From the IMG/VR virus record IMGVR_UViG_3300044680_000280, positions 310,001-374,000 of that record: DNA of 64,000 nucleotides. One strand, given 5' to 3'. The position numbers were made by a program, and so were the translations under genes. Under the pieces are notes generated by a model. The model was not told the DNA's origin. It was given only the letters and a program-made list of their open reading frames with translations, and made no database searches. Of the stretch, positions 5,974-63,471 are shown one piece after another (position 1 is the first letter of the stretch; every line of letters begins with the position of its first letter).

Positions 5974-6182
5974 TCAGATCATCCGGTGAGAGGATTCGGA
6001 TCGCACATGCCATTGCCCGATTGAGAATCATCCTAGACCAGGTCGAACAGACGCTCGACGTGGACGCGCCCCCGGGGCCGGATGTCGGTCAAGCGGTCGC
6101 TCATACTGGTGTCGATCTTGCATGTTCGATTGCCCGTCTGGAAGCCTACATGCGTGCGGAAGAAGATAACGGTGGGGCGTGA
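5964..6182 (+). CDS. hypothetical protein
   Basis: Overlapping-operon ORF. Confidence 0.6.
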   Translation: MHVIRSSGERIRIAHAIARLRIILDQVEQTLDVDAPPGPDVGQAVAHTGVDLACSIARLEAYMRAEEDNGGA

Positions 6183-6691
6183 TGCCCGATTGGCTCAGTC
6201 ACTTGCTCATCTTTTTCAATGAAACGGGGGTTACCGAAGGCAAGCAGATCCTCTCCCTCTCTGAGCAGTGGCAACCCTTCACGGAAGAACAGTGGGTGAG
6301 ACTGGACTACCGAGTTCGGTCGGTCTGCGTCCGGGAGGCGATGTCGTTCTTCAATATGAGGCTTTTCAAGAGGCTCGGGGTATGTAAGCAGATTATCGAT
6401 CTGTGTGACCGTGCAGGTCGTGGTGAGATAGTCGCCCTTGTTGAGTGGAGCGAAGCTCGCGCCCTGGCGTCAGGTAAGGGTCTGCCAGTCGAGATCGTGA
6501 GAGCAACGCGAGAGCCGTCGTTGGTTGGGTCCTGGGTGGTTCGTGAGTTGGCGTCGTTGGTGTCTAGGAAACGAGGGGCACTGACGTGCGTTGCTCAAGC
6601 CACGTACAAGCTCATCGAGGAAGAGATCCGAGTAACGAGAGCCGCTCGTCTAACCGTCTGGTCGCATCTGATGGACGAGGACTCGGTGTAA
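6179..6691 (+). CDS. hypothetical protein with W-tag (paralog of 52628-53119)
   Basis: C-terminus RLTVWSHLMDEDSV*; shares EQWVRLDYRVRSVC with the paralog. Confidence 0.75.
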   Translation: MMPDWLSHLLIFFNETGVTEGKQILSLSEQWQPFTEEQWVRLDYRVRSVCVREAMSFFNMRLFKRLGVCKQIIDLCDRAGRGEIVALVEWSEARALASGKGLPVEIVRATREPSLVGSWVVRELASLVSRKRGALTCVAQATYKLIEEEIRVTRAARLTVWSHLMDEDSV

Positions 6692-6700
6692 GGATAGGCT

Positions 6701-7528
6701 ATGTCCGAACCGAAAGAGCTAATTCGTGGAGTCGCAGACGCAGAAGTGCGTACGGTTTCAATTGACGTGCCATACGGTCAGGGCTGGCGCGTCTCCGTTG
6801 GGAAGGTTTCTCTCACGTCGGATTCGTCTTTAGCGTCCGTCACCGTCGTAGGACCCAACGGGGGCTTGCGGACCATCGGAATCGACTTGGACAAGGTCAT
6901 TTTACTCAATCCGCCGATGGACATTCCGACTCCCGACAGGGCGGTCGTTCACCATGTCGCAAACGTCATGAACGACGTACGGCGCAGTCGCTTGCTGGGC
7001 GGCTCGGTCGCGAACACAGAATCCGCAACGCAGCTTCTTCTTGAACTCGTCCGAGGGGATGAGTCATCTTTGGGGAGAAGCGTCCTCATCCGTAAGGACC
7101 GTACGAAGGGCACCTATACGGCGCGTTGGATGGAACGGAACGTCATCGGACAGGGGATGACGCTTGAACAAGCCCTTCAGGAACTTAAGGCGGTCATCCT
7201 CTTTCAGGAGAAAATTGACGAGGAGGTTCTTGCCGCGGCTGAGGGAGATCAGCGTCTTGGGTCAGACTCTTTCATCGAATTCGCGCTGAACGTTCCCATA
7301 AACGATCAGTGGCGGGTCACCATGGCACGGATCGGTGCGGACTTGGCTCCCATCGCACATGTGGTTTTTCAATGCCTCGACGGGCGAGAGCATATTACGG
7401 GCATCCATCTTGACAAGGGGATCCTGCTGTGTCCACTCATTCACTTACCAAATCCGACCCCTGAGGTCATGAGCCAGATAGTGTCGAGAATGAATGAAGA
7501 ACGGGCTCGGTCACGGACCTACAGGTAG
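6701..7528 (+). CDS. hypothetical protein with internally duplicated domain
   Basis: DVPYGQGW...GIDLDKVILLNP and NVPINDQW...GIHLDKGILLCP; A-motif at 6684. Confidence 0.75.
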   Translation: MSEPKELIRGVADAEVRTVSIDVPYGQGWRVSVGKVSLTSDSSLASVTVVGPNGGLRTIGIDLDKVILLNPPMDIPTPDRAVVHHVANVMNDVRRSRLLGGSVANTESATQLLLELVRGDESSLGRSVLIRKDRTKGTYTARWMERNVIGQGMTLEQALQELKAVILFQEKIDEEVLAAAEGDQRLGSDSFIEFALNVPINDQWRVTMARIGADLAPIAHVVFQCLDGREHITGIHLDKGILLCPLIHLPNPTPEVMSQIVSRMNEERARSRTYR

Positions 7529-7557
7529 GTCCACTTCGGTCTCAATTCGCAAAAGCA

Positions 7558-7839
7558 GTGGGTCGAAACCATGGGTACATTACAGTCCAGAAGGAAAATG
7601 TAGGTGGTCTAATGGGTCGTCCCGGTGGTAACAGTGGCAAAGGTGGGCGCAATTACCGCCTGAACTGGAAAGACCACGACGGAGTGTCAAGATACTCGAA
7701 GTGGTCGATCCACCTCAACTCTGCTGGGAAGGCTGTCATCTGCTTTGACGGGCAACCCATGACGGGCACCCGCTCCTTCGCTTCCGTGGAGAACGCAAAG
7801 CGGCGGGTGGAGAAGATGATAAGAAAGGCGAAACTATAA
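7558..7839 (+). CDS. hypothetical basic protein
   Basis: ORF; TAATG overlap with the next gene. Confidence 0.55.
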   Translation: MGRNHGYITVQKENVGGLMGRPGGNSGKGGRNYRLNWKDHDGVSRYSKWSIHLNSAGKAVICFDGQPMTGTRSFASVENAKRRVEKMIRKAKL

Positions 7840-8042
7840 TGGCTCAGCACGTCAAGCCCGCTGATCACCCGAACTGTCCCGAATGCCGAGGGGAGACGGT
7901 CGAAGAGCTCCCCGGTGCCCCCGAGTGCTCTCTCGGGTGCCACTTCTACATCCGGAGCCTGGGCGCTTGGTTCGACGCTGACGTGCGAGGGGGCCCGCCC
8001 CTCGCAACGCGGCCGCCGTGCGCCCCCGAGGACGTTGTTTGA
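7839..8042 (+). CDS. small Zn-finger-like protein
   Basis: CPEC...CSLGC. Confidence 0.55.
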   Translation: MAQHVKPADHPNCPECRGETVEELPGAPECSLGCHFYIRSLGAWFDADVRGGPPLATRPPCAPEDVV

Positions 8043-8079
8043 GGTTGAACGTGGTTTCGATCTACGCTGTACTTCCGCC

Positions 8080-8283
8080 ATGGAAACCGTCGAACGTCTG
8101 ATGAAGGAGAACGAAGAGCTTCGGGCTCAGGTCAAAAAGCAACTCGTTTTGCTGAGGTCGGCAGAGTACGAGCTTTACAATGTGCGAGTACGGATGATAG
8201 CCGAAGACAAATACAAAGGCGACGCGTGGACCAGGCTCAACGCGCTACTTCATCTCATTCATGTGGCTACGGTCTCGACATGA
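8080..8283 (+). CDS. hypothetical coiled-coil protein
   Basis: B-promoter at 8045; ATG 8 nt after the TA of the -10 element. Confidence 0.7.
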   Translation: METVERLMKENEELRAQVKKQLVLLRSAEYELYNVRVRMIAEDKYKGDAWTRLNALLHLIHVATVST

Positions 8284-9124: not shown

Positions 9125-9185
9125 TCCGTGAGCGGGTTGAACTCCGGCGAATCCCCGCTGTACTAGGAGGGAAGGAGTTACGACG

Positions 9186-12142: not shown

Positions 12143-12436
12143 ATGAAGCATCACGACTGGGTGCAAGAGACCCCACATCAGCCGTTGCATTTCCCCGAAA
12201 ACAAGCAATGGGTATGCCACGGTTGCGGAACTCGCATTATCTCTGTGGCTAGGCCCCAGGTCCTTGAGGATGACGCGGTCTGCTACACCGCGCGGCGAGT
12301 TGACACGGTCACTGGTGACGTTGTCTTGGAATTCTTCGGAAAGAAGTCATTACCTTACATTGTGACAGACTGCAATCTTCAGGGGCTTCACTTACTCTAC
12401 TTCGGTCTCATGGCGACCTGGGTCGCGAAATCCTGA
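12143..12436 (+). CDS. hypothetical Zn-binding protein
   Basis: HDW...WVCHGCG. Confidence 0.55.
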   Translation: MKHHDWVQETPHQPLHFPENKQWVCHGCGTRIISVARPQVLEDDAVCYTARRVDTVTGDVVLEFFGKKSLPYIVTDCNLQGLHLLYFGLMATWVAKS

Positions 12437-12717
12437 GCCTCTTCATCCGCAATCCTAGCGAGGACCTCCCCGTGACACGGTAGCGGGGCACACCAACACC
12501 CGAGGATCTTGCCCTTGAGCTCGTTCTTGACCCTCAGGACCATGTTGGGTTGAGCCAGAAGCCACTCCTCGTAGCGTCTGATCGCTTCCGTTCGAGAGGA
12601 GACTCGGAACTCGGCGAGGGTATCTTTCTTGTGGCTGAACGGGTTTCCCCAGGGTGACGGACGCCCGATGTAGACGTCGTAACGCCTCTTCTTGCAGTGG
12701 ACGACAGAGGTGGTCAT
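12397..12717 (-). CDS. DUF4326-family protein
   Basis: VVHCKK..YDVYIGRPSPWGNPF and LGCWCAPLPCHGEVL signature. Confidence 0.9.
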   Translation of the reverse strand: MTTSVVHCKKRRYDVYIGRPSPWGNPFSHKKDTLAEFRVSSRTEAIRRYEEWLLAQPNMVLRVKNELKGKILGCWCAPLPCHGEVLARIADEEAQDFATQVAMRPK

Positions 12718-13597: not shown

Positions 13598-13645
13598 GTC
13601 CTATATACTACACCGGGTCCCCGCCCTCGGTGTAAAGATAGTCTC

Positions 13646-14569
13646 ATGCCGTTGGACGATGATGAGGTGCGGGTCCTAAATCTACGAATCCTGAATCTTG
13701 AGAACCATCTCGCGACGGTCAACGCGGTTCTTTCTCGTATGGCATTGCTTGAGACACCCTCGGTTGAGCCCCCAACCCCACCAGAGACCCCACCAGAGGT
13801 TGAATTCGATGAAACGGACCTCGCACGTATTTGGGTGGAGTGGGGTGAAGTTGAGGGCCGCATTGTTAACGACGGGCACCACCCCATTACTGAGCACTAT
13901 CCCGACAGTGCGTCCGGGTTCGAGTTGTACAGGGAAGAGTGGCTCGAACTACGAATGGGGTCTGAGGAATCGACATGGAACTCAGCTCAACAGAGCGCGG
14001 CTAGAGTTGTCAGGGCTATGCCGAATCCTTATGTGTTACAAGAGAGGGCTCAGGATGCATGGCATTCCATGTCCAGGTACATACAAGAAACGGGGCATCA
14101 TCCGTTTCTGTACGAGGGGAGAGAGTACGCTGATTCGGCGGCGGGGTTCGAGTTGTTCATTGACTATTGGGTAGAGAGATACGTGGGCTTGTGGGGTCGT
14201 GGGTCCTCAAGGTATGAGCTCCAAACCCGCATTGTGAATCGTATTGTCACCGCAACGCCGAACCCCTATTTGCTAAGGGCGCAGGGCCCGGGTCTTCGGG
14301 ATGAATTTCCAATACAGGCCATCGCATTGACCTCAGACTTCGAGGACGTGCCTCCAAACGTCGTCAAGGCCGAGTCAATACTATTGACTCCTGAGGAAGT
14401 GGCTAGACTCACAGGTTACCTCAAACCCTACGAAATGTCGGTCGGTCAGTTGGCCACCAACCTTTTGCGAGAATGGCTCACCACCCATCGAGAGTATGAA
14501 ATTGCAGCGGTGGATCAATCACCCAAGACCATTTGGGACCACATTATGGACGTCCCCACTGAGGGGTGA
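13646..14569 (+). CDS. repeat-domain protein (2 copies of HP..YPD..GFE..W..PNPY) with W-tag
   Basis: A-motif at 13628; C-terminus KTIWDHIMDVPTEG*. Confidence 0.8.
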   Translation: MPLDDDEVRVLNLRILNLENHLATVNAVLSRMALLETPSVEPPTPPETPPEVEFDETDLARIWVEWGEVEGRIVNDGHHPITEHYPDSASGFELYREEWLELRMGSEESTWNSAQQSAARVVRAMPNPYVLQERAQDAWHSMSRYIQETGHHPFLYEGREYADSAAGFELFIDYWVERYVGLWGRGSSRYELQTRIVNRIVTATPNPYLLRAQGPGLRDEFPIQAIALTSDFEDVPPNVVKAESILLTPEEVARLTGYLKPYEMSVGQLATNLLREWLTTHREYEIAAVDQSPKTIWDHIMDVPTEG

Positions 14570-14898
14570 CTGGGATGGCAAAAGCACGAGGCATGATTGT
14601 CTACCGGGGATCGAGCACCAACCTGCTCGATACGGACAGATTCTACGCAAATTCAGACCCCACAATGGGGTACCGAATTGTGAACCCAGGTTACACACGG
14701 AACGGGGAGACGATAGAGGTCGAAGCTGAACAGGACGGGGAACACGGGAATCGCCCTTCAGGTGAGACCCTCACCTTTCTCTTCATTTCTACCCATTCCG
14801 TTGTGAACATCGTCGGTGGTGCCGATCTGATTCCTATTCCCATCGAACTTAACGGACCTCGGAAGACAATATGGGAACATTTGGTGGGTGAAGGGTGA
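14566..14898 (+). CDS. hypothetical protein with W-tag
   Basis: C-terminus RKTIWEHLVGEG*. Confidence 0.75.
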   Translation: MTGMAKARGMIVYRGSSTNLLDTDRFYANSDPTMGYRIVNPGYTRNGETIEVEAEQDGEHGNRPSGETLTFLFISTHSVVNIVGGADLIPIPIELNGPRKTIWEHLVGEG

Positions 14899-14919: not shown

Positions 14920-15255
14920 ATGCCTCCCTCTGAGAACCACTCAGAATGTGATGCTCGCATCGAGGCACTCCACTCAGAATGTGATGCTCGCATCGTGACA
15001 CTCCAGTTGGAAGTGCGGCGGCTCGATACACGGCTTATTTGGCTCAATACACGGCTCGTAACTCTAGAGGCAACGGTTGAGGAACGGAATGATGAACCGG
15101 AGACGACCTTAGCTTCCGAGGACGGATCACCCCCGTTCCGTGTGCCCAGTCTCTGGTCCTCGGATATCGTGGTATCCCATATATTCGAAGAACATAAGGA
15201 CGACGGTTCACCTAGGGTCTCAGCTTGGGATCACATAATGAGTGAGGACGCTTGA
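14920..15255 (+). CDS. coiled-coil protein with W-tag
   Basis: TGGTGTA at 14903; C-terminus RVSAWDHIMSEDA*. Confidence 0.75.
   Translation: MPPSENHSECDARIEALHSECDARIVTLQLEVRRLDTRLIWLNTRLVTLEATVEERNDEPETTLASEDGSPPFRVPSLWSSDIVVSHIFEEHKDDGSPRVSAWDHIMSEDA
14937..14995 (+). repeat. 26-bp direct repeat, period 33 (HSECDARI x2)
   Basis: ccactcagaatgtgatgctcgcatcg at 14937 and 14970. Confidence 0.9.
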
Positions 15256-15257
15256 CC

Positions 15258-16523
15258 ATGCCCGACGAAGTCACCACCCGAATTGAAGCGCTCGATAGAC
15301 GGATCTCCGACATCGAATCCCTTTACGGTAACCTCAGGGTGGTCAACTTTGAGAGCCAGGTTCGAGCTGCGTGGGCTCCCATTGAGGAGCAGATCCAATC
15401 GAGCGGACGTCACCCTCTCGAGTTCAACGGTTCTACCTACCCCGACACAAGTAGTGGATTTGAGAGGTTCCGTATCGACTGGATCTACGGCATCGTTGCT
15501 GTTGCTGAGACATCCCCACTGTACAACATCAGACTTCAAATTGCGTCTCTAGTGGTGATGTCAGTTCCCAACCCCTACATGTCACTAATCAATGTAGGAA
15601 ATCCAGACATTAATATGGGCTCCGGGGAGTGGGTACAGGTAGGAACCACTCGGTTTGCTGCTGCATACGAGAGTGCGATTCGAAGCTTATGGGGCAGGGC
15701 GATACCGCAAGAGTACGCGAGAGATTGGGTGGGATTTGAGTCTTTTCGTCAGGATTGGGTGACTCTACAGTTGCAGGATTACCCAACGACGAGTCCCGGA
15801 TACGCCGCTAGGGAGCCTATTATTAGGCGAGTGGTGGACGAGACGCCGAATCCGTATCCACGTATGGACAACCCTCAACGGGACATTCCCACTGCGACGA
15901 CTCTTGTCGATCTCGTACAGGCGGGCTCGTCGGCTGATGTAAGGGTCATCGCATTCATAGGTCGGGTTCGAGCTGCATGGGGGGAATCCGCTGCCTTCAT
16001 TGCGAGTAACGGTAGTCACCCCTTGCGTCCCATCTTTGGCATCTATGGTGAATCCGAAGAAGAGTACAATCGTTTCGTCGAGGATTGGATCAGCACTTTT
16101 ATCAGCGAAGATGTGACTGAGGATGAGCCGGACGACACCTATAAAACGATACTCGCGAATGGCGTCGTGTCTGAGACCCTTAACCCCTTTCGAACTCGTC
16201 GGCTTCACGCCTCGGTAGCCGGTGGTTCGATCGCGCCTACCGGCGGAACAGTTACGAATCAAATCGCCGACGATACGGTCGGATACGACATCGCTCTTCA
16301 GGAGTTCTTCATCCGGTTGCCGAATGTCACGCATTCCCAGATGCTTGAGTTTCAGAACGAAGTCTCTCACGTCGTACCCACCCGGGCGGGGGACGCTGTC
16401 GTTGCCTATATGAGGCGCACGGTAGGGGGTTTTTTCGGGACCGTAAAGCGAGATCCCTCGCCCGTTGAAAAAATTGAACCCAAGGTCTCCATTTGGGACC
16501 ATTTAATGGAAGGAGACCGGTAA
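15258..16523 (+). CDS. repeat-domain protein (3 copies) with W-tag
   Basis: Three ...GFE.F..DW...VV...PNP[YF] units; C-terminus KVSIWDHLMEGDR*. Confidence 0.8.
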   Translation: MPDEVTTRIEALDRRISDIESLYGNLRVVNFESQVRAAWAPIEEQIQSSGRHPLEFNGSTYPDTSSGFERFRIDWIYGIVAVAETSPLYNIRLQIASLVVMSVPNPYMSLINVGNPDINMGSGEWVQVGTTRFAAAYESAIRSLWGRAIPQEYARDWVGFESFRQDWVTLQLQDYPTTSPGYAAREPIIRRVVDETPNPYPRMDNPQRDIPTATTLVDLVQAGSSADVRVIAFIGRVRAAWGESAAFIASNGSHPLRPIFGIYGESEEEYNRFVEDWISTFISEDVTEDEPDDTYKTILANGVVSETLNPFRTRRLHASVAGGSIAPTGGTVTNQIADDTVGYDIALQEFFIRLPNVTHSQMLEFQNEVSHVVPTRAGDAVVAYMRRTVGGFFGTVKRDPSPVEKIEPKVSIWDHLMEGDR

Positions 16524-16539: not shown

Positions 16540-17028
16540 TCACACATGCCAAAGGAGAGAACGTGGCGCCACGGTGCAGATTCCCTTGGAGGCGGTCACT
16601 AGAGCCGCCTCCTCCCGTGGGTCTAAAGAGACCGTCACCGCGTACTTGGGGTTGCCCGAGATGATCTTAATAGATGGCACATAACGCCGCAGACTCGTAA
16701 TAATGTCCACTTCTCTGCCCGCCGCTGACTCCCGTAGAAGCTCGGGAAGCAGCGTCAAGGTTCTCTCGAGCAGGATTCCTCCCAGTGCCTTTATGGATTG
16801 TTCGAGTGTCACTACCGATGGCAGACGTTCCAGGCTCGAGGTCCGCTGCCAAGCCACGTCGTCTAGTACCTTTGTGGCCGCCAAGACGATCTGGTAGAGA
16901 TCGAGCAGGTCCCTCGCCCTAATGCAGGGCTCATGATTGCATTCCTCAAAAGAACATTTGTGACCCATACCCTCATGGTGGTCTTTACGGTCCTGAGCAC
17001 TTGCTACTGCGTTCACAAAACTACCCAT
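16540..17028 (-). CDS. hypothetical protein
   Basis: Operon ORF, GAAGG upstream. Confidence 0.6.
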   Translation of the reverse strand: MGSFVNAVASAQDRKDHHEGMGHKCSFEECNHEPCIRARDLLDLYQIVLAATKVLDDVAWQRTSSLERLPSVVTLEQSIKALGGILLERTLTLLPELLRESAAGREVDIITSLRRYVPSIKIISGNPKYAVTVSLDPREEAALVTASKGICTVAPRSLLWHV

Positions 17029-17269
17029 TGTCTTGCCCTTCCTCTTCCAGCATGTGTTCAAAGACTGTTTTGGAATTAACCGGTTTTACGGGAATTTCTT
17101 GTGGTTGAGGAACGACTACGGGCTGCTCTGGCACCACCGCTCGTCGGGCTCTCCATCGGTTCCAAAGGGAACCAAAGAGGTTGTTGCGCACCGCGGTGGA
17201 TAGAGCGGCAAAGAACATGCTCACCGCGGTGTATGCCCCAACCTCCATAATGGTGTCGCGCGGTGTCAT
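17021..17269 (-). CDS. small membrane protein with W-tag variant
   Basis: Hydrophobic N-terminus; KTVFEHMLEEEG near the C-terminus. Confidence 0.7.
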   Translation of the reverse strand: MTPRDTIMEVGAYTAVSMFFAALSTAVRNNLFGSLWNRWRARRAVVPEQPVVVPQPQEIPVKPVNSKTVFEHMLEEEGQDNG

Positions 17270-21379: not shown

Positions 21380-21430
21380 GCGGGTTCTTTACACCGTAAC
21401 TTTACGGTGTACCGGTGTAGAGAAGTAATC

Positions 21431-25958: not shown

Positions 25959-25967
25959 GACGTTGGG

Positions 25968-49788: not shown

Positions 49789-50094
49789 TCAGGCATCCGG
49801 ATTAGATACCTCAGACTTGAGTTTCGTCAAGAGTCGCTCGATTCCGAGGGCGATGTTGTCGTAAATGGGGCGCCTCATCGCTGGGTGCGGGGCGGTCCGA
49901 CCGTTTTTCCAACGTTCGAAACTCGACACGCTCAAACCGAACCGTACTCTGAGGACCTTCTCCTCGTCAAATACCCTCAGTTCTACCATCCGGTTGATAA
50001 GTTCTCGAAAAGTATCAGAGCTGTGCGTGGGGGCCGCCTTCAGATCCTCCATGAGTTTCGTGAGTTCTGCGATACGGTTGGACACGGTAAACAT
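49789..50094 (-). CDS. XRE-like helix-turn-helix protein
   Basis: FGLSVSSFERWKNGRTAPHPAMR. Confidence 0.7.
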   Translation of the reverse strand: MFTVSNRIAELTKLMEDLKAAPTHSSDTFRELINRMVELRVFDEEKVLRVRFGLSVSSFERWKNGRTAPHPAMRRPIYDNIALGIERLLTKLKSEVSNPDA

Positions 50095-50151
50095 TCTACT
50101 ACACCAAGATTCTCGATGAGTCAAGACCTCAGCCGGTGTAACCTGGGAACT

Positions 50152-51031: not shown

Positions 51032-51084
51032 GGTTGAACCGACCGCCCTTCCGTGTTGTACTCCCGTTAAAGGACGAGCGAACC

Positions 51085-52562: not shown

Positions 52563-52627
52563 GCCTTTTTATTACACCGTTTTTTTACACTCGCCGCAGG
52601 TTTTTGGCTCGGTGTACGCTATTGGGT

Positions 52628-53119
52628 ATGCCGGAGTGGCTTTCTAGCCTGCTCAGATTATTCACCGATAATGGGGTCAGGAACGGGATCGTCTCGGATC
52701 TAGCCAGTCGGTGGGGCGTTCTGTCTGACGAACAGTGGGTGAGACTGGACTACCGAGTCCGGTCGGTTTGCATCCGTGAAGCGGTGAGTCACACGAACGG
52801 TATTACGATTCTCGCTGTTTGTGAGACCGCGGCAACTCTATGTGACCGTAGAGGTCGAGGTGAGCCCGTCACTGATGCCGAATGGTTGGACGCCCGCCGC
52901 AAGGCGTCGGCGGTGACAGGGAGTCCGGCGGTGGTGGCGTTGGCGTCGACGTTGGCAGCATCGAATTCGATGCCATGTGCATGGTTGGCGGCGAGTTCGG
53001 CATCGTCGTTGACCCGCATTGCCCAAGCCACCTACGACCTCATCGACCAAGAAATCGATTTGACGCGAGCCGCCAGACCCAAAGCCATGACGATCTGGGA
53101 GCACATAATGGAGAATTGA
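52628..53119 (+). CDS. paralog of 6179-6691 with W-tag
   Basis: A-motif at 52610; MTIWEHIMEN*. Confidence 0.8.
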   Translation: MPEWLSSLLRLFTDNGVRNGIVSDLASRWGVLSDEQWVRLDYRVRSVCIREAVSHTNGITILAVCETAATLCDRRGRGEPVTDAEWLDARRKASAVTGSPAVVALASTLAASNSMPCAWLAASSASSLTRIAQATYDLIDQEIDLTRAARPKAMTIWEHIMEN

Positions 53120-53451: not shown

Positions 53452-54024
53452 ATGCTCTCGGATCAAACGAAGGAAGCCATTCTCACCGAGTATCTCAAAA
53501 ATGGTGGGCGTCACCAAAAGCCGCCTGAGACCTCATTTGGACCGAAAACTGGGTTCCGTTGTACGTGCGGCGGCCCCCTTTACCAAAGGTACGACCTCTT
53601 CGAGTCGCGACTTCCCCCGCGCAAAGGTCCTCGTCGTAGCAAAAACCGTCGGATCGCCAAAAAGCAACTCAAGAGGTGGCTCGAGGAAGAATGCATGCTT
53701 TATCGGTTCGAGTTCGCGTTGAACCTTCTACGAGGCCCCCGCGGGTATATCTGCGGCTCTTGTTACAGAAACGTTGGATTTTACGAGGCCATCGGCCGCA
53801 ACACCTTCATTGTTGAGCAACTCCCGGACGGCGCTCTGCCGATTTACGACCGAGATCCTGATGTTACGGCGTTCGATCCCGCCTCAGGACAAGCTCTTAC
53901 GGTAGAGAACGTCCTCCCCGGCTCCCAAACCGTAGAGGTCCTCGATCGTTTGGATCCGATACCCCTCCCCAAAGAGGAAGGTACGGATCTCCAGGTTCCC
54001 AACCTTGGCGTCGACGAGGACTGA
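53452..54024 (+). CDS. Zn-finger protein carrying a segment resembling a major capsid protein N-terminal region
   Basis: A-motif at 53436; IGRNTFIVEQLPDGALPIYDRDPDV. Confidence 0.55.
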   Translation: MLSDQTKEAILTEYLKNGGRHQKPPETSFGPKTGFRCTCGGPLYQRYDLFESRLPPRKGPRRSKNRRIAKKQLKRWLEEECMLYRFEFALNLLRGPRGYICGSCYRNVGFYEAIGRNTFIVEQLPDGALPIYDRDPDVTAFDPASGQALTVENVLPGSQTVEVLDRLDPIPLPKEEGTDLQVPNLGVDED

Positions 54025-54366
54025 ACGGACGCCGAACTCACGGGCGCCCTCAACCTCGACGTTCCGGACGAGGAAGGAAGCGATGTGCCGACCCCGCATG
54101 TCGGGACGGACCGTGATGTTTTTAATCTCGAGCGCGGTCGGTTCTGCCATGTGCCGCTGGTAGATTACGGCTCCGATGACATTCCCTCTTGAAAGAGCCA
54201 CGAGAGCCCGTTTGGTCTCATCCTTGAGCTGGGAGTGGACCTTTTGGAGCCATCCGTCGAAGTCTGGGTAGTCCTCGTGTGGGATCCAGAGTCGCGGTCC
54301 CCGCAGGTAGTTCAAGATCTCATCCGCCCGCCGGTCCATCCCGTCGCTGGTGAACAGGAATTCCAT
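53884..54366 (-). CDS. GNAT-family acetyltransferase
   Basis: IKNITVRPDMRGRHIASFL (motif A), F..EGY. Confidence 0.85.
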   Translation of the reverse strand: MEFLFTSDGMDRRADEILNYLRGPRLWIPHEDYPDFDGWLQKVHSQLKDETKRALVALSRGNVIGAVIYQRHMAEPTALEIKNITVRPDMRGRHIASFLVRNVEVEGAREFGVRSVLVDAKVGNLEIRTFLFGEGYRIQTIEDLYGLGAGEDVLYRKSLS

Positions 54367-54870: not shown

Positions 54871-55179
54871 ATGGCCCACGTGTGGACTACAACGCTGCCC
54901 GACAAGACTACAGTGTGGGTGTATTCGCGCTTCTACCATCAGGGTGTCCACTACAACGGGACCTGCTGTCAATACTGCGGAGCCCAAAAGTGCACCGTTC
55001 CGGGGAGCCGTGCGGGTCTTGTTCGCACCCTCTACATCACATTCAAATACGGCAAACCGTATCGTTTTAGTCCCAAAGCCCCGATCTGCATTCGAGAGGA
55101 CGAGACCTTTGCCGTTGAGGTACCCAAACCTCTCCCGAACAGGATGACGGTCTATGACCATCTGCTGAGCCCGAGCTAA
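54871..55179 (+). CDS. Cys-containing protein with W-tag variant
   Basis: A-motif at 54854; RMTVYDHLLSPS*. Confidence 0.75.
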   Translation: MAHVWTTTLPDKTTVWVYSRFYHQGVHYNGTCCQYCGAQKCTVPGSRAGLVRTLYITFKYGKPYRFSPKAPICIREDETFAVEVPKPLPNRMTVYDHLLSPS

Positions 55180-55947: not shown

Positions 55948-57309
55948 ATGCGAACCTCCTTCTGTGGGCGACTTCGAGACCGTGCTGAGGCCTTTTGGCA
56001 AAAGCACAAGAACTGGGAAGCCCCGCCGATCCCGAAGAACGTTCGACGAGTCGTGGGTGCGGTTCAAACTTTGCTCCCATTCCTGGCGGACAGGGAGGAC
56101 ACCCTTATCCAAAAGACGCTGAAGGGCATCTCTCTCGCTGAAGCCGTATACCGCATAGTGGAGGGGAACCGCCTGATTTCCGAGTATTCGGCGTACCTAG
56201 AACAGTGGGATTTGGTCCAGTCGTCAAACCGTAACCTTGCCCAACTGCTCTCTCAGTCGAAGATCTTGGAGATGCTTCCCTGCAATGAGATCCCGCTTTC
56301 CCACGGTGAGGCCAAATTCTGGGAGATTAATTCCGAGCAGGGGAAGTTTCTACTTGGAATTGGCGAGTACAACTCCAGCCTCGCTTATCCGGAGAATTTC
56401 GACGTACCAGGACTCCTGAACAGCCTCTGGAGCTGGTACGGGAACTGTATAACGATAAGTGTCCCTAAAAGGGGACACGGTAATCTGAGTTTGGAGTCCT
56501 TCCAAGAGCACCACGGGGAAATCCTCGGGAGCGCAAAGGCCACGTACGAACACTTCCTCTCGCAGCATCGCCGCTTTAAGGCGAATGGTAAGTCACGAAC
56601 TTACCTCTTCTACGGACCCCCCGGCACCGGAAAGAGCACCTTTTCTCGTAGACTGGCCTTGGAAACGAGCTCCCGCGTGCTCATCATCGACGCAACCTCC
56701 ATCTCTTTTTGGGGGTGCGACGAACTTCTCTACCTGCTATCAGCTCTTCAACCGGAGTTTGTTCTGCTGGACGACATTGATCGTGCTTCGAGTTCCATGT
56801 TTCTGCCGCTCCTCGAAAGGGTCAAACAAGAGGTGCCGGAAACGTCGTTCGTAATCACGGTCAACGATGTCTCGAAGCTCGACAAGGCACTGTTTCGACC
56901 CGGTCGGATCGATACCGTGCATGAATTTCTTTCTCCGGTGGAGGACGACCGCCGTGAAGTCATCTTGGGTTATCTCAAGCAGAGTCTTCAAATCGTGGAC
57001 AAGGAGACCCTGGAATTCCTAGTCAAAAGTACGGAAGGAATGTCTCAAGACTACCTCAGAGAGCTCGTTCTACGCCTCGACTACGAGGATGTGCCGAGCG
57101 CCCTCCTTTCTGTCATGAATCTGTGGAATCTTTCAGGCGGGAAATCTTCGAACAGCGCACCGGTTCCGGTCGGGTCTTCGTCAGAGCCAGAAGAGTCAGA
57201 GTCGGAGCCAAAGTCGGATAGACAACCACCGGTAAATATGACCAAAAGCACCGTTTCCTGGCGGTCTGTAAAAGATGGCTCAGTTTCGTCATACCCGATT
57301 GCCCGTTGA
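55948..57309 (+). CDS. AAA+ ATPase
   Basis: Walker A YGPPGTGKST, Walker B LLDDID, SRH ITVND...ALFRPGRID. Confidence 0.92.
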   Translation: MRTSFCGRLRDRAEAFWQKHKNWEAPPIPKNVRRVVGAVQTLLPFLADREDTLIQKTLKGISLAEAVYRIVEGNRLISEYSAYLEQWDLVQSSNRNLAQLLSQSKILEMLPCNEIPLSHGEAKFWEINSEQGKFLLGIGEYNSSLAYPENFDVPGLLNSLWSWYGNCITISVPKRGHGNLSLESFQEHHGEILGSAKATYEHFLSQHRRFKANGKSRTYLFYGPPGTGKSTFSRRLALETSSRVLIIDATSISFWGCDELLYLLSALQPEFVLLDDIDRASSSMFLPLLERVKQEVPETSFVITVNDVSKLDKALFRPGRIDTVHEFLSPVEDDRREVILGYLKQSLQIVDKETLEFLVKSTEGMSQDYLRELVLRLDYEDVPSALLSVMNLWNLSGGKSSNSAPVPVGSSSEPEESESEPKSDRQPPVNMTKSTVSWRSVKDGSVSSYPIAR

Positions 57310-57771: not shown

Positions 57772-57790
57772 CTCGGTGTATACTAAGGGG

Positions 57791-58255
57791 ATGGTGTATC
57801 AGCCTAGGTCGGGAGATATTGTTCGGAGTGTCATACCCGATTGCCCGTTGAGCGCTCGAATTGGTGTGGTGCGGTCGCTGACTCCGGGTGGGTCGTACAA
57901 CGTTGCCTTTTCGAATACCTCCGTGGCCGTGTATACAGCCGATGAGATCGTCCCGCTCGTGGAAGGGGTAAATCGAGTCGAGCTGATCGGCGGTGTAAGC
58001 GCCATGGGTACTTATGCTGGGAAGTACCTACATAGTCCGGTGCACGGAATCTCCATCGACTGGGACCAGCACGGACGTGGAACTTTTCTGTTCGTCAACT
58101 CCGTACAAGCGTGTGATTGGGATCGTCTCAGACTCGTTGACAAAGTTGGTATGTCGATGACAGCCCCGAGGGAGATCCCGTGCCCAAACAAGAGCTGCCA
58201 ACGGAAGAACGATATCGGACGAAACTGCTACTGGTGCGGAACCCTCGTAGTATAA
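57791..58255 (+). CDS. SH3-like protein with conserved C-terminal Zn-ribbon tail
   Basis: A-motif at 57774; CPNKSCQRKNDIGRNCYWCG. Confidence 0.8.
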   Translation: MVYQPRSGDIVRSVIPDCPLSARIGVVRSLTPGGSYNVAFSNTSVAVYTADEIVPLVEGVNRVELIGGVSAMGTYAGKYLHSPVHGISIDWDQHGRGTFLFVNSVQACDWDRLRLVDKVGMSMTAPREIPCPNKSCQRKNDIGRNCYWCGTLVV

Positions 58256-58264: not shown

Positions 58265-58651
58265 ATGCCGTATAGCGAAAAAGTCATCAATCACTTCGAG
58301 AATCCTCGCAACGTTGGCTCCCTCGATAAGAACGATCCGAACGTCGGAACGGGCGTCGTCGGCGCCCCGGCCTGTGGAGACGTGATGAAGCTCCAGATCC
58401 TCGTCAACGACGACGGGGTCATCGAGGATGCTAAATTCAAAACCTTTGGGTGTGGAAGCGCGATTGCCAGTTCGTCCCTCGCGACCGAGTGGATCAAAGG
58501 CAAAACGCTCGACGAGGCGCAAGCCCTCAAGAACACGTCCATCGTCGAGGAACTCTGTTTGCCTCCCGTCAAAATTCACTGCTCTGTCCTGGCCGAGGAT
58601 GCCATCAAGAGCGCCATCGCTGATTACAGGAAAAAGAAGGGTTTGACTTGA
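58265..58651 (+). CDS. iscU: Fe-S cluster scaffold protein
   Basis: YSEKVINHFENPRNVG, GAPACGDVMKLQI, FGCGSAIASS, LPPVKIHCSVLAEDAI. Confidence 0.97.
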   Translation: MPYSEKVINHFENPRNVGSLDKNDPNVGTGVVGAPACGDVMKLQILVNDDGVIEDAKFKTFGCGSAIASSSLATEWIKGKTLDEAQALKNTSIVEELCLPPVKIHCSVLAEDAIKSAIADYRKKKGLT

Positions 58652-60301: not shown

Positions 60302-60552
60302 TGGACGTCGTCCTCGACTCCGCCGCCGCCCATGAGCTGGGCCTCCAGGCAATCGTACACGCTCTCGGTGATGAGCATGCACCGCATCATTGCTCGATTG
60401 GACAGGGCCTGGGAGTGATACTTGCACGACGCGATCAGTCCTCCGGTAGAGGAGTAGAATACCGTCGGCTTGTTTACGCATACGAAGGGGTTATCGTTGT
60501 CAAGATTCGCCAGGAATAGTGAGGCGAACCCCATGCAGCAGATCCTAGCCAT
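60298..60552 (-). CDS. hypothetical Cys-containing protein
   Basis: TAATG overlap with pyrE. Confidence 0.6.
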   Translation of the reverse strand: MARICCMGFASLFLANLDNDNPFVCVNKPTVFYSSTGGLIASCKYHSQALSNRAMMRCMLITESVYDCLEAQLMGGGGVEDDVQ

Positions 60553-61163
60553 TAGCGAGAAAGGTCCGTGATGTGAAACAGACTTAGAACTCGGTAAATT
60601 CGGCCCCTCTCGGTGTCCTTCAATGGGACATCGAGGTTTGGGTATCTGCGCTCGACAACGGTCACGATTCCGACGACCAAGTATTGGTTGGAGTCCTCGA
60701 GTGCTCGGATGGCTTTAATGGAGGACCCGCCCGTTGTGACAACGTCCTCAACCAAAACGACTCTGTTTAGCCTACCCTCGACCGGAGCGGGACCCTCGAT
60801 GAGATTCTTCGTTCCGTGGTCTTTTGCTTCCTTGCGAACGTGAAGGACGTCCAGGGGGAGGTCCTCGAGTGCGGCTTGGAAGCCCACGAGGCTTGCCAGG
60901 TGGCACCCGCCGAGGGCAACGCCCGCCACGGCATCGAATTGACTAACACCGACGAGCTGAAGCACGTGTTGGTGTAGGACGTAGGCGAGGGTCCGTTGAA
61001 TCGAATGGTGCATCGACGACTTTTTGACGTCGATGTAAACGTCCGACTTCTCTCCAGAGGCGAGGGTGAAGGGCTCCCCCTCCGGTGCGATTCGAACGGA
61101 TCGCTCTTTCATGACATCTCTGATTCGATTCAAATGAGGACGGAGATTCTCTCGGATGCTCAT
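60552..61163 (-). CDS. pyrE: orotate phosphoribosyltransferase
   Basis: FTLASGEKSDVYIDVK, VRKEAKDHGT and the PRPP loop VVLVEDVVTTGGS. Confidence 0.93.
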   Translation of the reverse strand: MSIRENLRPHLNRIRDVMKERSVRIAPEGEPFTLASGEKSDVYIDVKKSSMHHSIQRTLAYVLHQHVLQLVGVSQFDAVAGVALGGCHLASLVGFQAALEDLPLDVLHVRKEAKDHGTKNLIEGPAPVEGRLNRVVLVEDVVTTGGSSIKAIRALEDSNQYLVVGIVTVVERRYPNLDVPLKDTERGRIYRVLSLFHITDLSR

Positions 61164-61896: not shown

Positions 61897-62157
61897 TTTC
61901 GCCACGGACGCGAGCAGGTCGGATGCGTCCTTGGTCTGCCTCGTCGGCGGACGGTCATCCTCATCGTCGTCCTCTGGTGGAGTCGGTTGAGCTTCGGGAG
62001 GTTTGGGGGTTACGGGTTGGACGGTGTGCTTGATGGGCTTTCCGACGATGAGCTTGGCGATGAAGTCGTCCCAGCTCATGTTGCCCTTCAGTTGACGGGC
62101 GGTCTCGTAGACCTCGTCGCTGAGCTGGGCTTTAATCCATCGGTAACCAGCGGCCAT
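61876..62157 (-). CDS. ribbon-helix-helix-like protein with acidic/Pro tail
   Basis: IKAQLSDEVYE...MSWDDFIAKLI; A-motif at 62173. Confidence 0.6.
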   Translation of the reverse strand: MAAGYRWIKAQLSDEVYETARQLKGNMSWDDFIAKLIVGKPIKHTVQPVTPKPPEAQPTPPEDDDEDDRPPTRQTKDASDLLASVAKLRGVVR

Positions 62158-62269
62158 GACTCATTCTGTTACTACACCGATCCTGGAAGACTCGGGCATT
62201 TAATCCCGGTGTAACTGGAAGTTCACTCTCCGATCCCGTCCTCGTCAAACTGACCAAGTAACGTAATGG

Positions 62270-62479
62270 GTGCGGCGCCGTCGACATCCACTTCGTCTCG
62301 TGTGGTTGTTGATTGTGCTTTGGTTTCGGAGCTGGCGGCTTCTCTGGAGGTGCCCCATCTGCTCGAAGGTCAGGCGCTGGGGAACCGAACACCCGCTCGA
62401 CACGTATCCGATGTTATGCGACATGTGGAACCAGCCGGAGTGCTGTCGTCGAGAGTTTCCTAAATGGGCGTACGCTTGA
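62270..62479 (+). CDS. small Trp/Arg-rich protein
   Basis: A-motif at 62207; RLVWLLIVLWFRSWRLLWRC. Confidence 0.5.
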   Translation: MRRRRHPLRLVWLLIVLWFRSWRLLWRCPICSKVRRWGTEHPLDTYPMLCDMWNQPECCRREFPKWAYA

Positions 62480-62510
62480 ACTTTCCGATGCTCCGCGCCG
62501 TACTCCCGCC

Positions 62511-62933
62511 ATGGGTCTCATCGAACGTTTAATGCGGGAATTCCAGGATCGAAAAGCTCGTTGGCAACCAATTCGAGCAGCCATCCTCGCCCTTTCTGCC
62601 GAAGAACGCCTACAGTTCCTCGCGGAAATGATCACTGAAATCGAGGACAAAACCCCTAAAGGCAGACAGCTTAACAGCCACGATCACCTGTTAGCCGGGC
62701 CCGGTGAGTACACGTTTGGAGCGTCCAGGTTCCGCCTCAGTCGCAAAGTTGCAAAGAGGGTGGATCGCATCGCCAATGCGCACGGCTTTTGTCTGATTGA
62801 GGTCTCGAACTTTCCTGGTGGCGTGGAGTACCAGCGGTGGTTTTCTGGTCCGAGTCGTGGCAGCCCCATCGATGAAGAGACTGAGGTTGCCATTCTATCC
62901 GACATCGAGAAGGATGGGATCCCCTTGTGGTGA
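62511..62933 (+). CDS. hypothetical protein
   Basis: ORF. Confidence 0.65.
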   Translation: MGLIERLMREFQDRKARWQPIRAAILALSAEERLQFLAEMITEIEDKTPKGRQLNSHDHLLAGPGEYTFGASRFRLSRKVAKRVDRIANAHGFCLIEVSNFPGGVEYQRWFSGPSRGSPIDEETEVAILSDIEKDGIPLW

Positions 62934-62992
62934 CACTCGACGTTTGAACTTTCGGCTACACCACGCCGTACTTTCATGAGACAGGAACTTCA

Positions 62993-63175
62993 ATGTCACG
63001 CCCTACCAAAGCATCGCAATTCGTAGAAAGCCTTACAACGACTCAACGTCTCGCACTGATCGAGCTCATTGCTGGTACTGACGAGCTTGTCGGGCAGAAG
63101 AAGGCGACGTGCATACGTGACGCCCGGGCGCTCCTAGTGGGTGCCCTCGATCGCCTCTGCAAAGAATCTTGGTAA
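62993..63175 (+). CDS. hypothetical protein
   Basis: B-promoter at 62944, CAGGA SD. Confidence 0.65.
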   Translation: MSRPTKASQFVESLTTTQRLALIELIAGTDELVGQKKATCIRDARALLVGALDRLCKESW

Positions 63176-63177
63176 CC

Positions 63178-63471
63178 TCAGTCGTCTCCCATCATCTGCT
63201 CAAAAATACTCTTCCGGGGCGGCGGTTCAGGAGGCGCGGGCGGGGGAGACGACGGTGTTCTCGGACGGTTCCCATGCCACGCCTCGATGTTCTCCAGGCT
63301 CCGCCTAGTCGTCGACGGACACGGTAGCTTCTCAGGATCGGTCTCGCCCGTAAAGTTGATTCCCCACGCCTCCCGCAACTCCTGCCATTCTGGGTGGCTA
63401 TCACAGTACTCACATTTTGCGGGGGCATGAAGTACGGATGAGTCGCAGTGGGGGAATTGCTCGATGGGCAT
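63178..63471 (-). CDS. conserved phage-type Cys/His protein with W-tag variant
   Basis: FPHCD..LHAP..CEYCD..W..LREAWGINFTG; RKSIFEQMMGDD*. Confidence 0.75.
   Translation of the reverse strand: MPIEQFPHCDSSVLHAPAKCEYCDSHPEWQELREAWGINFTGETDPEKLPCPSTTRRSLENIEAWHGNRPRTPSSPPPAPPEPPPRKSIFEQMMGDD

Follow-up and report, generated by a model that had tools for sequence, protein, structure and literature searches.

Genes and tags in the window

The stretch of DNA considered here, referred to as the window, spans 64,000 nucleotides (positions 310,001 to 374,000 of IMG/VR record IMGVR_UViG_3300044680_000280) and is part of a huge-phage contig, for which a 463 kb JGI assembly exists. Scattered along the window are genes whose products differ in size and composition, but which share a roughly 12-residue peptide, P-R/K-x-T/S-I/V-W-D/E-H-L/I-M/L-acidic, found in most cases immediately before the stop codon. 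The carrier genes, with the position of each tag and its score in a 14-column position-specific scoring matrix (PSSM), are as follows, together with an AAA+ ATPase gene that lies among them.

6179-6691, plus strand: carrier of 169-170 aa, paralogue of 52604-53119 (45% identity); tag at 6641-6682, ending AARLTVWSHLMDEDSV; PSSM 34.7; the last codons, TCG GTG TAA, are also the CGGTGTAA box of the next gene.
13646-14569, plus strand: carrier of 307 aa by the JGI call (P0041 in the profile search), a repeat protein and paralogue of 15258-16523; tag at 14516-14557, ending QSPKTIWDHIMDVPTEG; PSSM 30.8; a CGGTGTAA box lies 10 nt before the start; first of four consecutive tagged genes.
14575-14898, plus strand: carrier of 107 aa; tag at 14854-14895, ending GPRKTIWEHLVGEG; PSSM 34.4.
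14920-15255, plus strand: carrier of 111 aa with a heptad-like N-terminal half (P0038, E 1.1e-05 in the exhaustive profile search); tag at 15208-15249, ending SPRVSAWDHIMSEDA; PSSM 33.1.
15258-16523, plus strand: carrier of 421 aa, a repeat protein with no homologue among 5.8 billion proteins except itself; tag at 16476-16517, ending EPKVSIWDHLMEGDR; PSSM 35.7.
17021-17269, minus strand: carrier of 82 aa (P0039) with a Pro-rich linker and one borderline hydrophobic stretch (Kyte-Doolittle 1.32 only); tag at 17039-17080, ending NSKTVFEHMLEEEGQDNG; PSSM 28.7.
19555-19891, minus strand: carrier, Zn-ribbon-like paralogue of 21062-21379, frameshifted here at 19820-19822; tag at 19561-19602, ending APRRTVWDHLVEDES; PSSM 35.8; a CGGTGTAT box lies 9 nt before the ATG at 19891.
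21062-21379, minus strand: carrier of 105 aa with 3 CxxC/Cx4C pairs; tag at 21065-21106, ending RARLTVWDHLTNED; PSSM 30.8.
24596-24871, minus strand: carrier of 91 aa with 8 Cys, called as a gene in the sequence L044; tag at 24602-24643, ending PVKTVWDHLMDPSV; PSSM 34.9.
25601-25891, minus strand: carrier of 96 aa, basic; tag at 25604-25642, ending KPTMTIWDHLLKD; PSSM 31.9.
25884-26006, minus strand: possible mini-carrier of about 40 aa; tag at 25887-25928, ending SAKLSVWERIAHDE; PSSM 24.0, leave-one-out 12.6, the weakest accepted member; CGGTGTAT box at 26016-26023.
26544-27179, plus strand: doubtful member of 211 aa, coiled-coil-like; DIKNLWGSLLESETV at 27129-27170, before the stop.
38469-39239, minus strand: carrier of 256 aa with the tag at the N-terminus (residues about 14-27); tag at 39159-39200, MAISLRRAKAPMREPKKSVWEHILEEEE; PSSM 36.6; the start is supported by a CGGTGTAC box 10 nt upstream.
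39795-40346, minus strand: carrier of 183 aa with an internal tag (residues about 91-104) between two parts; tag at 40035-40076, GPRRTIWSHLMDEALE; PSSM 34.5.
42696-43046, minus strand: carrier of 116 aa (P0040); tag at 42699-42740, ending EPRTTLWQRLVEDE; PSSM 27.9.
52604-53119, plus strand: carrier of about 171 aa, paralogue of 6179-6691; tag at 53078-53116, ending PKAMTIWEHIMEN; PSSM 31.8.
54871-55179, plus strand: carrier of 102 aa, Cys-rich; tag at 55135-55176, ending PNRMTVYDHLLSPS; PSSM 29.3; a CGGTGTAA box lies 9 nt upstream.
55948-57309, plus strand: Bcs1/YjoB-like classic-clade AAA+ ATPase, not shown to belong to the system.
63178-63471, minus strand: carrier of 97 aa with a poly-Pro linker; tag at 63181-63222, ending PPRKSIFEQMMGDD; PSSM 30.7; the start is fixed by a TGGTGTAT box.

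All 18 peptides of the initial annotation are present in the sequence, and its central observation is confirmed, although the count of about 18 proved an underestimate and a number of details required correction. The carrier ending at 19555 is interrupted in this assembly by a GGG run at 19820-19822, but is intact, at about 117 aa, in the 463 kb JGI assembly (L043). The peptide KLSVWERIAHDE (25884) sits in an ORF that was called by neither JGI nor Logan. The inclusion of membrane proteins among the carriers is not supported, because the best hydrophobic 19-mer in any carrier has a Kyte-Doolittle mean of no more than 1.46. Likewise, the linker preceding the tag was described as Pro/Lys-rich, but while Pro is enriched 1.9-fold in the 20 residues upstream, Lys is not, and the K/R residues belong to the motif itself at positions -4 and -3.

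A distinct motif under selection as a peptide

Whether the motif is more frequent at protein termini than in shuffled sequence had been named beforehand as a point on which the proposal could fail. A loose regular expression gives 16 hits that lie within 10 residues of a stop in ORFs of at least 50 codons, as compared to a mean of 0.2 in 30 mononucleotide shuffles and 0 in the reversed sequence. The PSSM scores the 18 instances at 19-36.6, with the next best six-frame hit in the window at 8.4. In leave-one-out scoring, 17 instances score 12.6-34 and form a sharply separated class, whereas KNLWGSLLESETV (stop 27179), which lacks P/K/R, T/S and H, scores -2.6 and is doubtful. The motif is strongly conserved (Trp 5.4 bits, His 4.8 bits).

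Third codon positions carry about 0.1 bit of information (0.01-0.6 bit in the core), as compared to 1.2-2 bits (1.1-2.0 in the core) at first and second positions, showing that selection acts on the peptide and not on a DNA repeat. This argues against the possibility that the tag is a translated DNA repeat, a chance occurrence, or the remnant of one ancestral C-terminal domain in a diverged paralogue family. Four paralogue pairs do exist among the carriers, but with the tag masked only these 4 links remain among 30 carriers, and no similarity is left outside the tag for about 26 families ranging from 40 to 423 aa. Furthermore, one carrier is a complete DUF1643 domain (residues 1-141 of 189) followed by a 48-residue extension ending in the tag, which is here an appended module. 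Shuffled, reversed and 1 Mb unrelated-locus controls give about 0 C-terminal hits, and a non-functional origin is therefore very unlikely.

Position, predicted structure and distribution

The tags are not limited to the window. Another 12 lie in 47 kb of flanking sequence from the 463 kb assembly; these were not used to build the PSSM and score 16-36.8, against about 0.1 hits in shuffles. In total there are 29 robust tags over about 95 kb, in about 26 unrelated protein families. Of 30 copies, 27 are C-terminal (1.7 expected), while three lie 50-229 residues from a stop, indicating that N-terminal and internal positions are tolerated. AlphaFold2, run on the 17-row tag alignment, predicts a separate 10-residue helix (V22-S31) beginning directly after the T/S, with a pLDDT of about 83 in that block.

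In the C-terminal copies the aromatic residue sits 6-12 residues before the C-terminus, and 7-8 residues in 19 of 27 cases. Because the genes are tightly packed, and the upstream box of the next gene often overlaps the stop, it could be imagined that the tag acts in cis, as a nascent peptide in the ribosome tunnel that causes pausing at termination or coupling to the next gene, and not as a protein-protein motif. This is improbable, as three copies are far from a stop, and the amphipathic pattern, the N-cap, the Pro boundary and the tether all point to a folded docking helix. The two assemblies, otherwise near-identical and differing only by a 1-nt indel, offer no comparative evidence on this reading.

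Elsewhere the tag is rare. The only other occurrence is on a 2 kb metagenome contig with two adjacent tagged genes (W-E/G-Q-L-M-E-D-E), which represents a different genome (64% against 56% GC) with no shared proteins. Searches of GenBank phages, IMG/VR, metagenome contigs, the PDB (with a profile) and the literature gave nothing further, and neither Pfam nor PHROGs provided a named family. A strict back-translated pattern found only 5 chance-level single hits in 596 Gb of bacterial and archaeal genomes, and so the host itself does not use this tag widely.

Candidate partners

No partner was identified for the tag. The initial annotation suggested the AAA+ ATPase at 55948-57309, and one possibility is that the tag is a recognition signal or degron for this enzyme, or for a host protease, that times the removal or remodelling of early proteins. 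The AAA+ gene lies among the tagged genes, and its product belongs to the classic clade, with Cdc48/p97, Bcs1, YjoB and proteasomal Rpt as closest sequence and fold relatives, and has a folded N-domain. However, the family, N-domain included, occurs in other phage contigs that carry no tags (L002, L091), the Phe-Trp-Gly at the pore-loop position is not conserved across the family, Walker B reads D-D, and no protease is nearby. A degron that needs a free C-terminus is also unlikely, since the tags end in acidic residues, which C-terminal degrons such as ssrA are not known to tolerate, and three copies are not terminal. The ATPase is thus a weak candidate, and this reading is very doubtful.

Alternatively, the tag may dock onto a hub enzyme rather than a container, such as a sliding clamp, RNA polymerase, a ribosome-associated factor or a host protein, with many accessory proteins taking turns on one machine. 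Hub-binding linear motifs (the PIP box, the beta-clamp binding motif and the SSB C-terminal tail) are likewise short, terminal, tethered and aromatic or acidic, and let many unrelated proteins share one docking site; the tag has this anatomy, being aromatic plus acidic and occasionally N-terminal or internal. Zn-ribbon-like carriers could be nucleic-acid binders, and the presence of the tag in two genomes with no shared proteins would fit a common host factor. By inspection, however, the motif matches neither the beta-clamp motif (QL[SD]LF) nor the PIP box (Qxx[LIM]xx[FY][FY]), and the PDB and bacterial genome searches described above lend no support. Moreover, the carriers are orphan accessory proteins rather than replication or repair enzymes, with the possible exception of DUF1643, and thirty competitors for one site on a low-copy enzyme is awkward. 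A hub enzyme remains possible but is not favoured.

A comparably tentative reading is that the tag is an import or recruitment signal for an intracellular phage-built compartment or replication factory, working like a nuclear localisation signal or PTS1, such that a receptor or shell protein would recognise the helix and concentrate the carriers where the phage DNA is. Many unrelated carriers are tagged, including enzyme-like ones that need access to DNA or nucleotides, for instance the DUF1643 domain protein and a small P-loop protein (P0042), and the carriers are soluble and acidic, like cytoplasmic effectors. The indifference to position is also a feature of bacterial microcompartment encapsulation peptides, which are defined as a short amphipathic helix joined to the functional domain by a poorly conserved linker, found at either terminus (PMC4594438, PMC12339742), the same anatomy as here. 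Those peptides, however, are about 18 residues long with almost no sequence conservation, whereas the tag is about 12 residues long and strongly conserved. No shell, tubulin or importer gene was seen in the 111 kb examined, no BMC shell domains are present in the window, and nucleus-forming phages are not known to have a linear signal, so that there is no precedent.

A probable cargo-type docking peptide and possible virion packaging

The preferred specific reading, itself tentative and based on analogy only, is that the receptor is part of the phage's own assembly, most likely the prohead scaffold or the inner capsid surface. In phage T4, one short peptide, the capsid targeting sequence (CTS, MKTYQEFIAE), is the only thing shared by a diverse, fast-evolving set of small accessory proteins (PMC3012670, PMC8442874). 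The CTS has an amphipathic pattern and loosely shares K-T-x-x-E-x-I-x-E with the consensus here, and both contain an L/I-x-E element. Against this, the CTS is N-terminal, is cleaved off by the prohead protease and has no Trp or His, so that the invariant Trp of the tag is without counterpart, and the number of carriers here is ten-fold larger. T4 internal proteins are highly basic (PMC8442874), whereas the carriers are significantly more acidic than their neighbours (median -3.3 against -0.8 net charge per 100 aa, p = 0.005). Encapsulin cargo-loading peptides are short C-terminal peptides on flexible linkers, attached to unrelated cargo proteins, that dock inside an HK97-fold shell, the fold of tailed-phage capsids. 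Their consensus is different (Gly/Ser/Leu-rich, with no W-D/E-H core), and the cargo gene normally sits next to the shell gene. No structural, scaffold, shell or protease gene was seen in the 111 kb examined, and thirty or more cargo species, some over 400 aa, is a heavy load for a capsid. No homology to the T4 CTS is demonstrable, and the T4, encapsulin and microcompartment peptides are considered analogues, not relatives.

The initial interpretation, a short amphipathic helix docking onto one common partner and belonging to no named family, is thus partly supported. The enrichment and terminal placement of the tag, its recovery in flanks left out of the model, selection on the peptide, attachment to unrelated proteins and to a complete Pfam domain, tolerance of other positions, the upstream Pro enrichment, the AlphaFold2 helix prediction and recurrence in a second genome were established by the analysis, whereas binding, the receptor and any destination of the carriers are inferred. 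In this view, a Pro marks the end of a flexible, Pro-enriched tether and is followed by K/R residues, and a T/S caps a predicted two-to-three-turn amphipathic helix whose hydrophobic face is I/V, W, L/I and M/L, completed by a conserved His (Gln or Arg in some copies) and an acidic tail. The module would have been added by evolution to about 26 unrelated, mostly small, soluble and acidic accessory proteins of one huge-phage lineage.

The general statement, one peptide for one common receptor, is considered likely. The best reading is a modular cargo-type docking or sorting peptide; the tag looks like an undescribed address label, with all copies inferred to plug into the same site on one abundant receptor, so that a large and changeable set of proteins would be brought to one place. 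Should the more tentative packaging version hold, the carriers would be packed and delivered with the DNA, as T4 does with its diverse internal proteins.

Genomic context of the tagged genes

The window lies on IMGVR_UViG_3300044680_000280, a contig of 406,734 bp, on which two window proteins are found at 100% identity and window position x corresponds to contig position 310,000 + x. The same sequence is present on a 463,523 bp JGI contig (3300044797, Ga0480565_0000004), where window position x corresponds to 262,535 - x, and in a Logan assembly. The copies are identical to the window except for one base, a length difference in a G run at 19820-19822 (GGG in the window and in the Logan contig, GG in the 463 kb JGI contig) that frameshifts a tagged Zn-ribbon-like gene (19555-19891, - strand) in the window but leaves it intact in the JGI copy, and which is either an assembly error or a natural variant. 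The window has a GC content of 56%, no tRNA or Rfam hit, and no nucleotide match in GenBank phages. Of about 126 ORFs most are orphans, and no virion gene was recognized among them. The recognizable genes, scattered among the orphans, are accessory or resemble auxiliary metabolic genes, and include three DUF2158 proteins and an AAA+ ATPase (55948-57309) in addition to the following:
58265-58651, NifU-like Fe-S scaffold
within 49729-50886, OMP decarboxylase
60552-61163, phosphoribosyltransferase
498-1289, HAD hydrolase
53884-54366, GNAT acetyltransferase
2324-3004, PRAI-like
12397-12717, DUF4326

Two classes of promoter-like sequence were found. The first is an 8-mer, YGGTGTAN (mostly CGGTGTAA), that occurs 82 times against 14.5 in shuffles, with about 40 copies ending exactly 8-12 nt (usually 9) before a start codon, including those of genes inside operons. 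Examples are:
5228-5235
13628-13635
21389-21396 (-)
31435-31442 (-) and 31490-31497 (+)
43344-43351 (-) and 43397-43404 (+)
54854-54861
Copies often form divergent back-to-back pairs between divergent genes, and their density is the same in all flanks of this phage. The box looks like a per-gene promoter with very short leaders, or a translation-initiation signal. The box of the next gene overlaps the stop of three tag-listed genes, 6179-6691, 24596-24871 and the doubtful 26544-27179, which explains why these proteins end in SV or TV. The second class is sigma-70-like, TTGAAC-N16-17-(C/T)TGTA(C/T)T, with 12 sites that include the following:
9137-9164
31077-31105 (-)
35572-35599
36134-36162
40486-40514
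49614-49642 (-)
51034-51062
These sites often end only 6 nt before the ATG, which would give leaderless transcripts. None of the genes directly behind this class carries the tag, but the numbers are too small for this to be significant as a clue to timing, and a scan for sigma-70 promoters and terminators showed no enrichment.

A conserved peptide under selection as a peptide

The observation made in the initial annotation, that many window proteins share a terminal peptide, holds, and every peptide that it listed is present in the sequence. A loose pattern gives 16 hits within 10 residues of a stop in ORFs of at least 50 codons, whereas shuffles give 0.2 and the reversed sequence gives 0. Furthermore, an unsupervised comparison of all ORF C-termini recovers the tag as the dominant cluster. 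A 14-column PSSM, spanning -6 to +7 around the aromatic residue, separates the instances from everything else, as the 18 instances score 19-36.6 and the next best six-frame hit in the window scores 8.4. In leave-one-out scoring, 17 of the 18 score 12.6-34, while KNLWGSLLESETV scores -2.6 and should be dropped or regarded as doubtful. The consensus is E/P, P, R/K, K/M/R/L, T/S, I/V, W (F/Y), D/E, H (Q/R), L/I/M, M/L/V, E/D, E/D, D/E, and the strongest columns are W (5.4 bits), H (4.8), M (4.0), T (3.4) and P (3.1).

Alignment of the 18 sites by codon shows that third positions in the core hold 0.01-0.6 bit, and that first and second positions hold 1.1-2.0 bits. A DNA repeat or regulatory site would not show this three-base periodicity, and a DNA-repeat explanation is rejected on these grounds.

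The tag extends beyond the window

A strict back-translated pattern hit the source contig only inside the window, but this pattern catches only the T..W.H..M variants, and examination of contig positions 179,180-290,324 of the 463 kb contig ruled out that the tag is confined to the window. The PSSM, which was built only from window instances, found 12 further tags in the flanks, scoring 16-36.8. They include five consecutive tagged genes upstream, for example with proteins ending in PPKKSVWEHLLEED, SPKKSVWEHMLEDEG and EPRKTVFDHLLGESE, and three more downstream. By comparison, shuffled flanks gave about 0.1 hit, reversed flanks gave 1 hit, and about 1 Mb of unrelated viral loci gave 9 internal hits and no C-terminal one. 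In total there are 29 robust and 2 doubtful tags between contig positions 189,149 and 283,934, a span of about 95 kb with about one tag per 3.3 kb, and the set is thus larger than the initial annotation proposed. No tag lies in the outer 10 kb and 6 kb of the sequence read, although internal gaps of up to 12 kb also exist, so these limits are not established as boundaries. A tyrosine-recombinase (Phage_integrase) gene (2418-3251 of L219, a stretch outside the window; contig about 181.6-182.4 kb) and an N6/N4 DNA methyltransferase gene lie just beyond the last tag on one side, and it is possible that the 463 kb element is temperate or that these genes mark a module boundary.

Position and predicted structure of the tag

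Of 30 strong hits, 27 are C-terminal, against 1.7 expected if placement within the ORF were uniform, and the aromatic residue lies 6-12 residues from the end, at 7-8 residues in 19 of the 27 cases. Three copies are not terminal:
38469-39239, tag near the N-terminus at residues about 14-27, with the start supported by the upstream 8-mer box
39795-40346, internal tag
a flank ORF, internal tag
A free C-terminus is therefore not required. Tags are followed by 0-5 further residues, the last columns of the tag are acidic, and the residues beyond them vary, unlike an ssrA-like degron with its non-polar last residues and free carboxylate at the extreme C-terminus. No hydrophobic helix follows the tag and the tail is acidic, in contrast to cell-surface sorting signals (LPXTG, PEP-CTERM and similar), in which the motif is followed by a transmembrane helix and a basic tail. 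A role as a cis-acting nascent peptide is considered very unlikely.

The 20 residues before the tag are Pro-enriched 1.9-fold. AlphaFold2, run on the last 32 residues of 6179-6691 with the 17 tags as its alignment, gives a break at A-A-R-L-T and then a separate helix, V22-S31 (V-W-S-H-L-M-D-E-D-S), with a pLDDT of about 83. In a helix, I/V (-1), W (0), L/I (+3) and M/L (+4) would form one hydrophobic face, and T/S would be in the N-cap position with D/E at N3, the last point being inferred from the pattern.

The carrier proteins

With the tag masked, BLASTP finds four paralogue relations among 30 carriers, plus one marginal hit (E = 0.009) linking two of those groups, so that about 26 unrelated families remain, and an artefact or paralogy is the least likely of the explanations considered. 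Carrier lengths run from about 40 to 423 aa. Several carriers are Cys-rich with CxxC pairs, two are repeat proteins, one has heptad repeats, and none has a convincing transmembrane helix. As a group they are more acidic than their neighbours even with the tag masked (median -3.3 against -0.8 charges per 100 aa, p = 0.005). No Pfam or PHROG family matches them, with one exception. A flank carrier has a complete DUF1643 domain (residues 1-141, E = 5.8e-28) followed by a 48-residue extension that ends in NRTTVYDHMMAPDEELT, showing directly that the tag is a module added to an otherwise complete domain.

Distribution in other genomes

An exhaustive HMM search of the tag profile against 1.84 billion representative proteins listed six hits at E <= 0.001, five of which are from this phage. 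The one foreign protein, P0042, is 105 aa with a small P-loop and ends in PVPEAPRLSVWEQLMEDET. It is encoded on L094, a 2,078 bp contig with 64% GC from JGI sample 3300044260, and the gene just upstream encodes a protein ending in SSNVWGQLMEDE. Apart from the tag, the L094 proteins do not resemble any window protein by tblastn, and the 8-mer box is not found before genes in L094. The tag is therefore conserved across two clearly different genomes while the carriers differ. Besides the tag, the only feature common to the two genomes is a second shared C-terminal module, a small Cys-rich tail (C-Q-R-x-N-D-I/V-G-x-N-C-Y-W-C-G-T) that ends the 399 aa protein next to the two tagged genes in L094 (pairwise E = 3e-4) and three window proteins, one of which shares only this tail with the others:
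33236-33565 (-)
51779-52312 (-)
57776-58255 (+)
L094 625-1824

All other searches were negative. Back-translated patterns were scanned against IMG/VR (two complete scans and a third, partial one), metagenome contigs, and 596 Gb of bacterial and archaeal genomes, and gave only chance-level single hits, none C-terminal in a real ORF with neighbours. The only C-terminal hit among the 5 matches in the genome collection, at 1304-1341 of L224 (Nanoarchaeota MAG contig JBBSWH010000016.1), is a single ORF of over 100 codons ending in CPNYTIWDQLLDGELHE, which is isolated and probably chance. A tblastn search of 50,697 GenBank phages with two tags gave chance hits only, the best in a non-coding frame, and a PDB profile search gave nothing even at E <= 10. 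Full-text literature searches for the motif strings returned irrelevant hits only. Homology of the carriers was no more informative, as the 421 aa carrier has no homologue among 5.8 billion proteins, and the tail of P0042 finds only itself. Because the strict patterns catch only 10-20% of known tags and the profile search lists only E <= 0.001, diverged relatives can have been missed.

The AAA+ ATPase as a candidate receptor

The ATPase at 55948-57309 belongs to the classic AAA clade. Its closest sequence relatives are p97/Cdc48, AFG2 and Bcs1, and its closest folds are Bcs1, B. subtilis YjoB and proteasomal Rpt subunits over nearly the full length (model pLDDT 79). It has Walker A, an Arg-finger region, a D-D Walker B (no catalytic Glu) that is invariant across its phage family, a conserved N-domain with an invariant Trp161, and a disordered, low-confidence C-terminal tail of about 55 residues. 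The family, including the N-domain, is found on other phage contigs at 42% to about 25% identity, and the two that were read (L002 and L091) carry no tag. The Phe-Trp-Gly at the pore-loop position is not conserved in the family. Proximity is thus the only link to the tag, making the ATPase a weak candidate, and recognition by an AAA+ protein or protease is unlikely. A search for recurrent C-terminal motifs of their own near the AAA+ homologues in L002 and L091 found none that was convincing. In L002, a distant 435 kb relative with 66% GC, two ORFs (ending at 2025 (+) and 10984 (-)) end with a near-identical PVP(A/S)RFDR stretch, the second continuing V-L-E-M-A-A, which is faintly tag-like (aromatic-D-basic-hydrophobic-L-E), but with only two copies in GC-rich sequence this may be chance.

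Comparison with known targeting and docking peptides

Three known systems share the anatomy described here. The capsid targeting sequence (CTS) of T4 is the only feature shared by its diverse internal proteins (PMC3012670; sequence in PMC8442874), just as the tag is shared by about 26 otherwise unrelated families. The CTS, however, lies within the first ~10 residues, whereas only 38469-39239 carries the tag near the N-terminus. When the consensus is aligned by inspection with MKTYQEFIAE (PMC8442874), K, T, E, I and E align but the near-invariant W and H align with Q and F, in a sequence too short for statistics. The CTS directs proteins into the prohead and is cleaved by the prohead protease, and no protease or scaffold gene lies in the 111 kb read. 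Encapsulin cargo-loading peptides are C-terminal and tethered, and bind an HK97-fold shell. The tag likewise follows a flexible linker at the C-terminus, but the encapsulin shell gene is adjacent to its cargo, and no encapsulin shell family was found by Pfam or PHROG among the 126 window ORFs or among the precomputed Pfam hits of the flanks. Microcompartment (BMC) encapsulation peptides are amphipathic helices on a poorly conserved linker at either terminus (PMC4594438, PMC12339742), consistent with the predicted helix, the hydrophobic residues at -1, 0, +3 and +4, and the variable Pro-rich linker of the tag, but BMC-H and BMC-P shell domains are absent from the Pfam scan of the window. Clamp-binding motifs have a conserved leading Gln and the pattern QL[SD]LF (beta-clamp motif) or Qxx[LIM]xx[FY][FY] (PIP box), whereas the PSSM columns show no Gln at the corresponding position and a different spacing. 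Membership in any of these named families fails on at least one defining feature, and these systems are analogues of the tag and not relatives.

Possible implications for protein sorting in a huge phage

The interpretation offered in the initial annotation, a short amphipathic helix that docks onto one common partner, is supported in part. The analysis establishes a conserved module, selected as a peptide and predicted to form a helix on a tether, that is attached mostly at the C-terminus to about 26 unrelated families in one phage lineage. That all copies bind one site on one partner is inferred, and a role in directing proteins into a prohead is suggested by analogy only. By analogy, a cargo-sorting role is preferred. 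Virion packaging is the leading but tentative reading, as the carriers are acidic while the internal proteins of T4 are basic, and no structural genes are nearby. Recruitment into an intracellular phage compartment or factory is possible but rather less favored, and docking on a hub enzyme or host factor is similarly doubtful, with the absence of comparable tags in the bacterial genomes searched arguing against a host hub. Some weight must also be left for an explanation that has not been thought of.

In kind, the tag resembles known targeting peptides, but it is new in sequence, in position and in scale, and no description of it was found in the sources searched. So far it is seen only in one phage, assembled from at least four samples, and in one 2 kb fragment of a second genome. 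How large phages sort their many accessory proteins, some into the virion, some into intracellular compartments and some onto host machines, is largely unknown. A strongly conserved peptide of about 12 residues on about 30 unrelated proteins would make that question directly testable, because one peptide could be used to fish out the receptor, one point mutation (W-to-A) would serve as a control, and the carrier list would be a ready-made catalogue of the cargo. If the tag loads proteins into particles or compartments, it is also a candidate engineering handle, as the T4 CTS and encapsulin peptides have become. A broader possibility, judged somewhat less likely than not, is that the tag is a linear import or sorting signal, with a dedicated receptor, by which a huge phage moves dozens of its own proteins into a self-built compartment, be it a capsid interior, a nucleus-like shell or a replication factory. 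In this view the tag would be the bacterial-virus counterpart of an NLS or PTS1, a portable tag for loading foreign proteins, and the first sequence-defined protein-sorting code in a phage beyond the T4 CTS.
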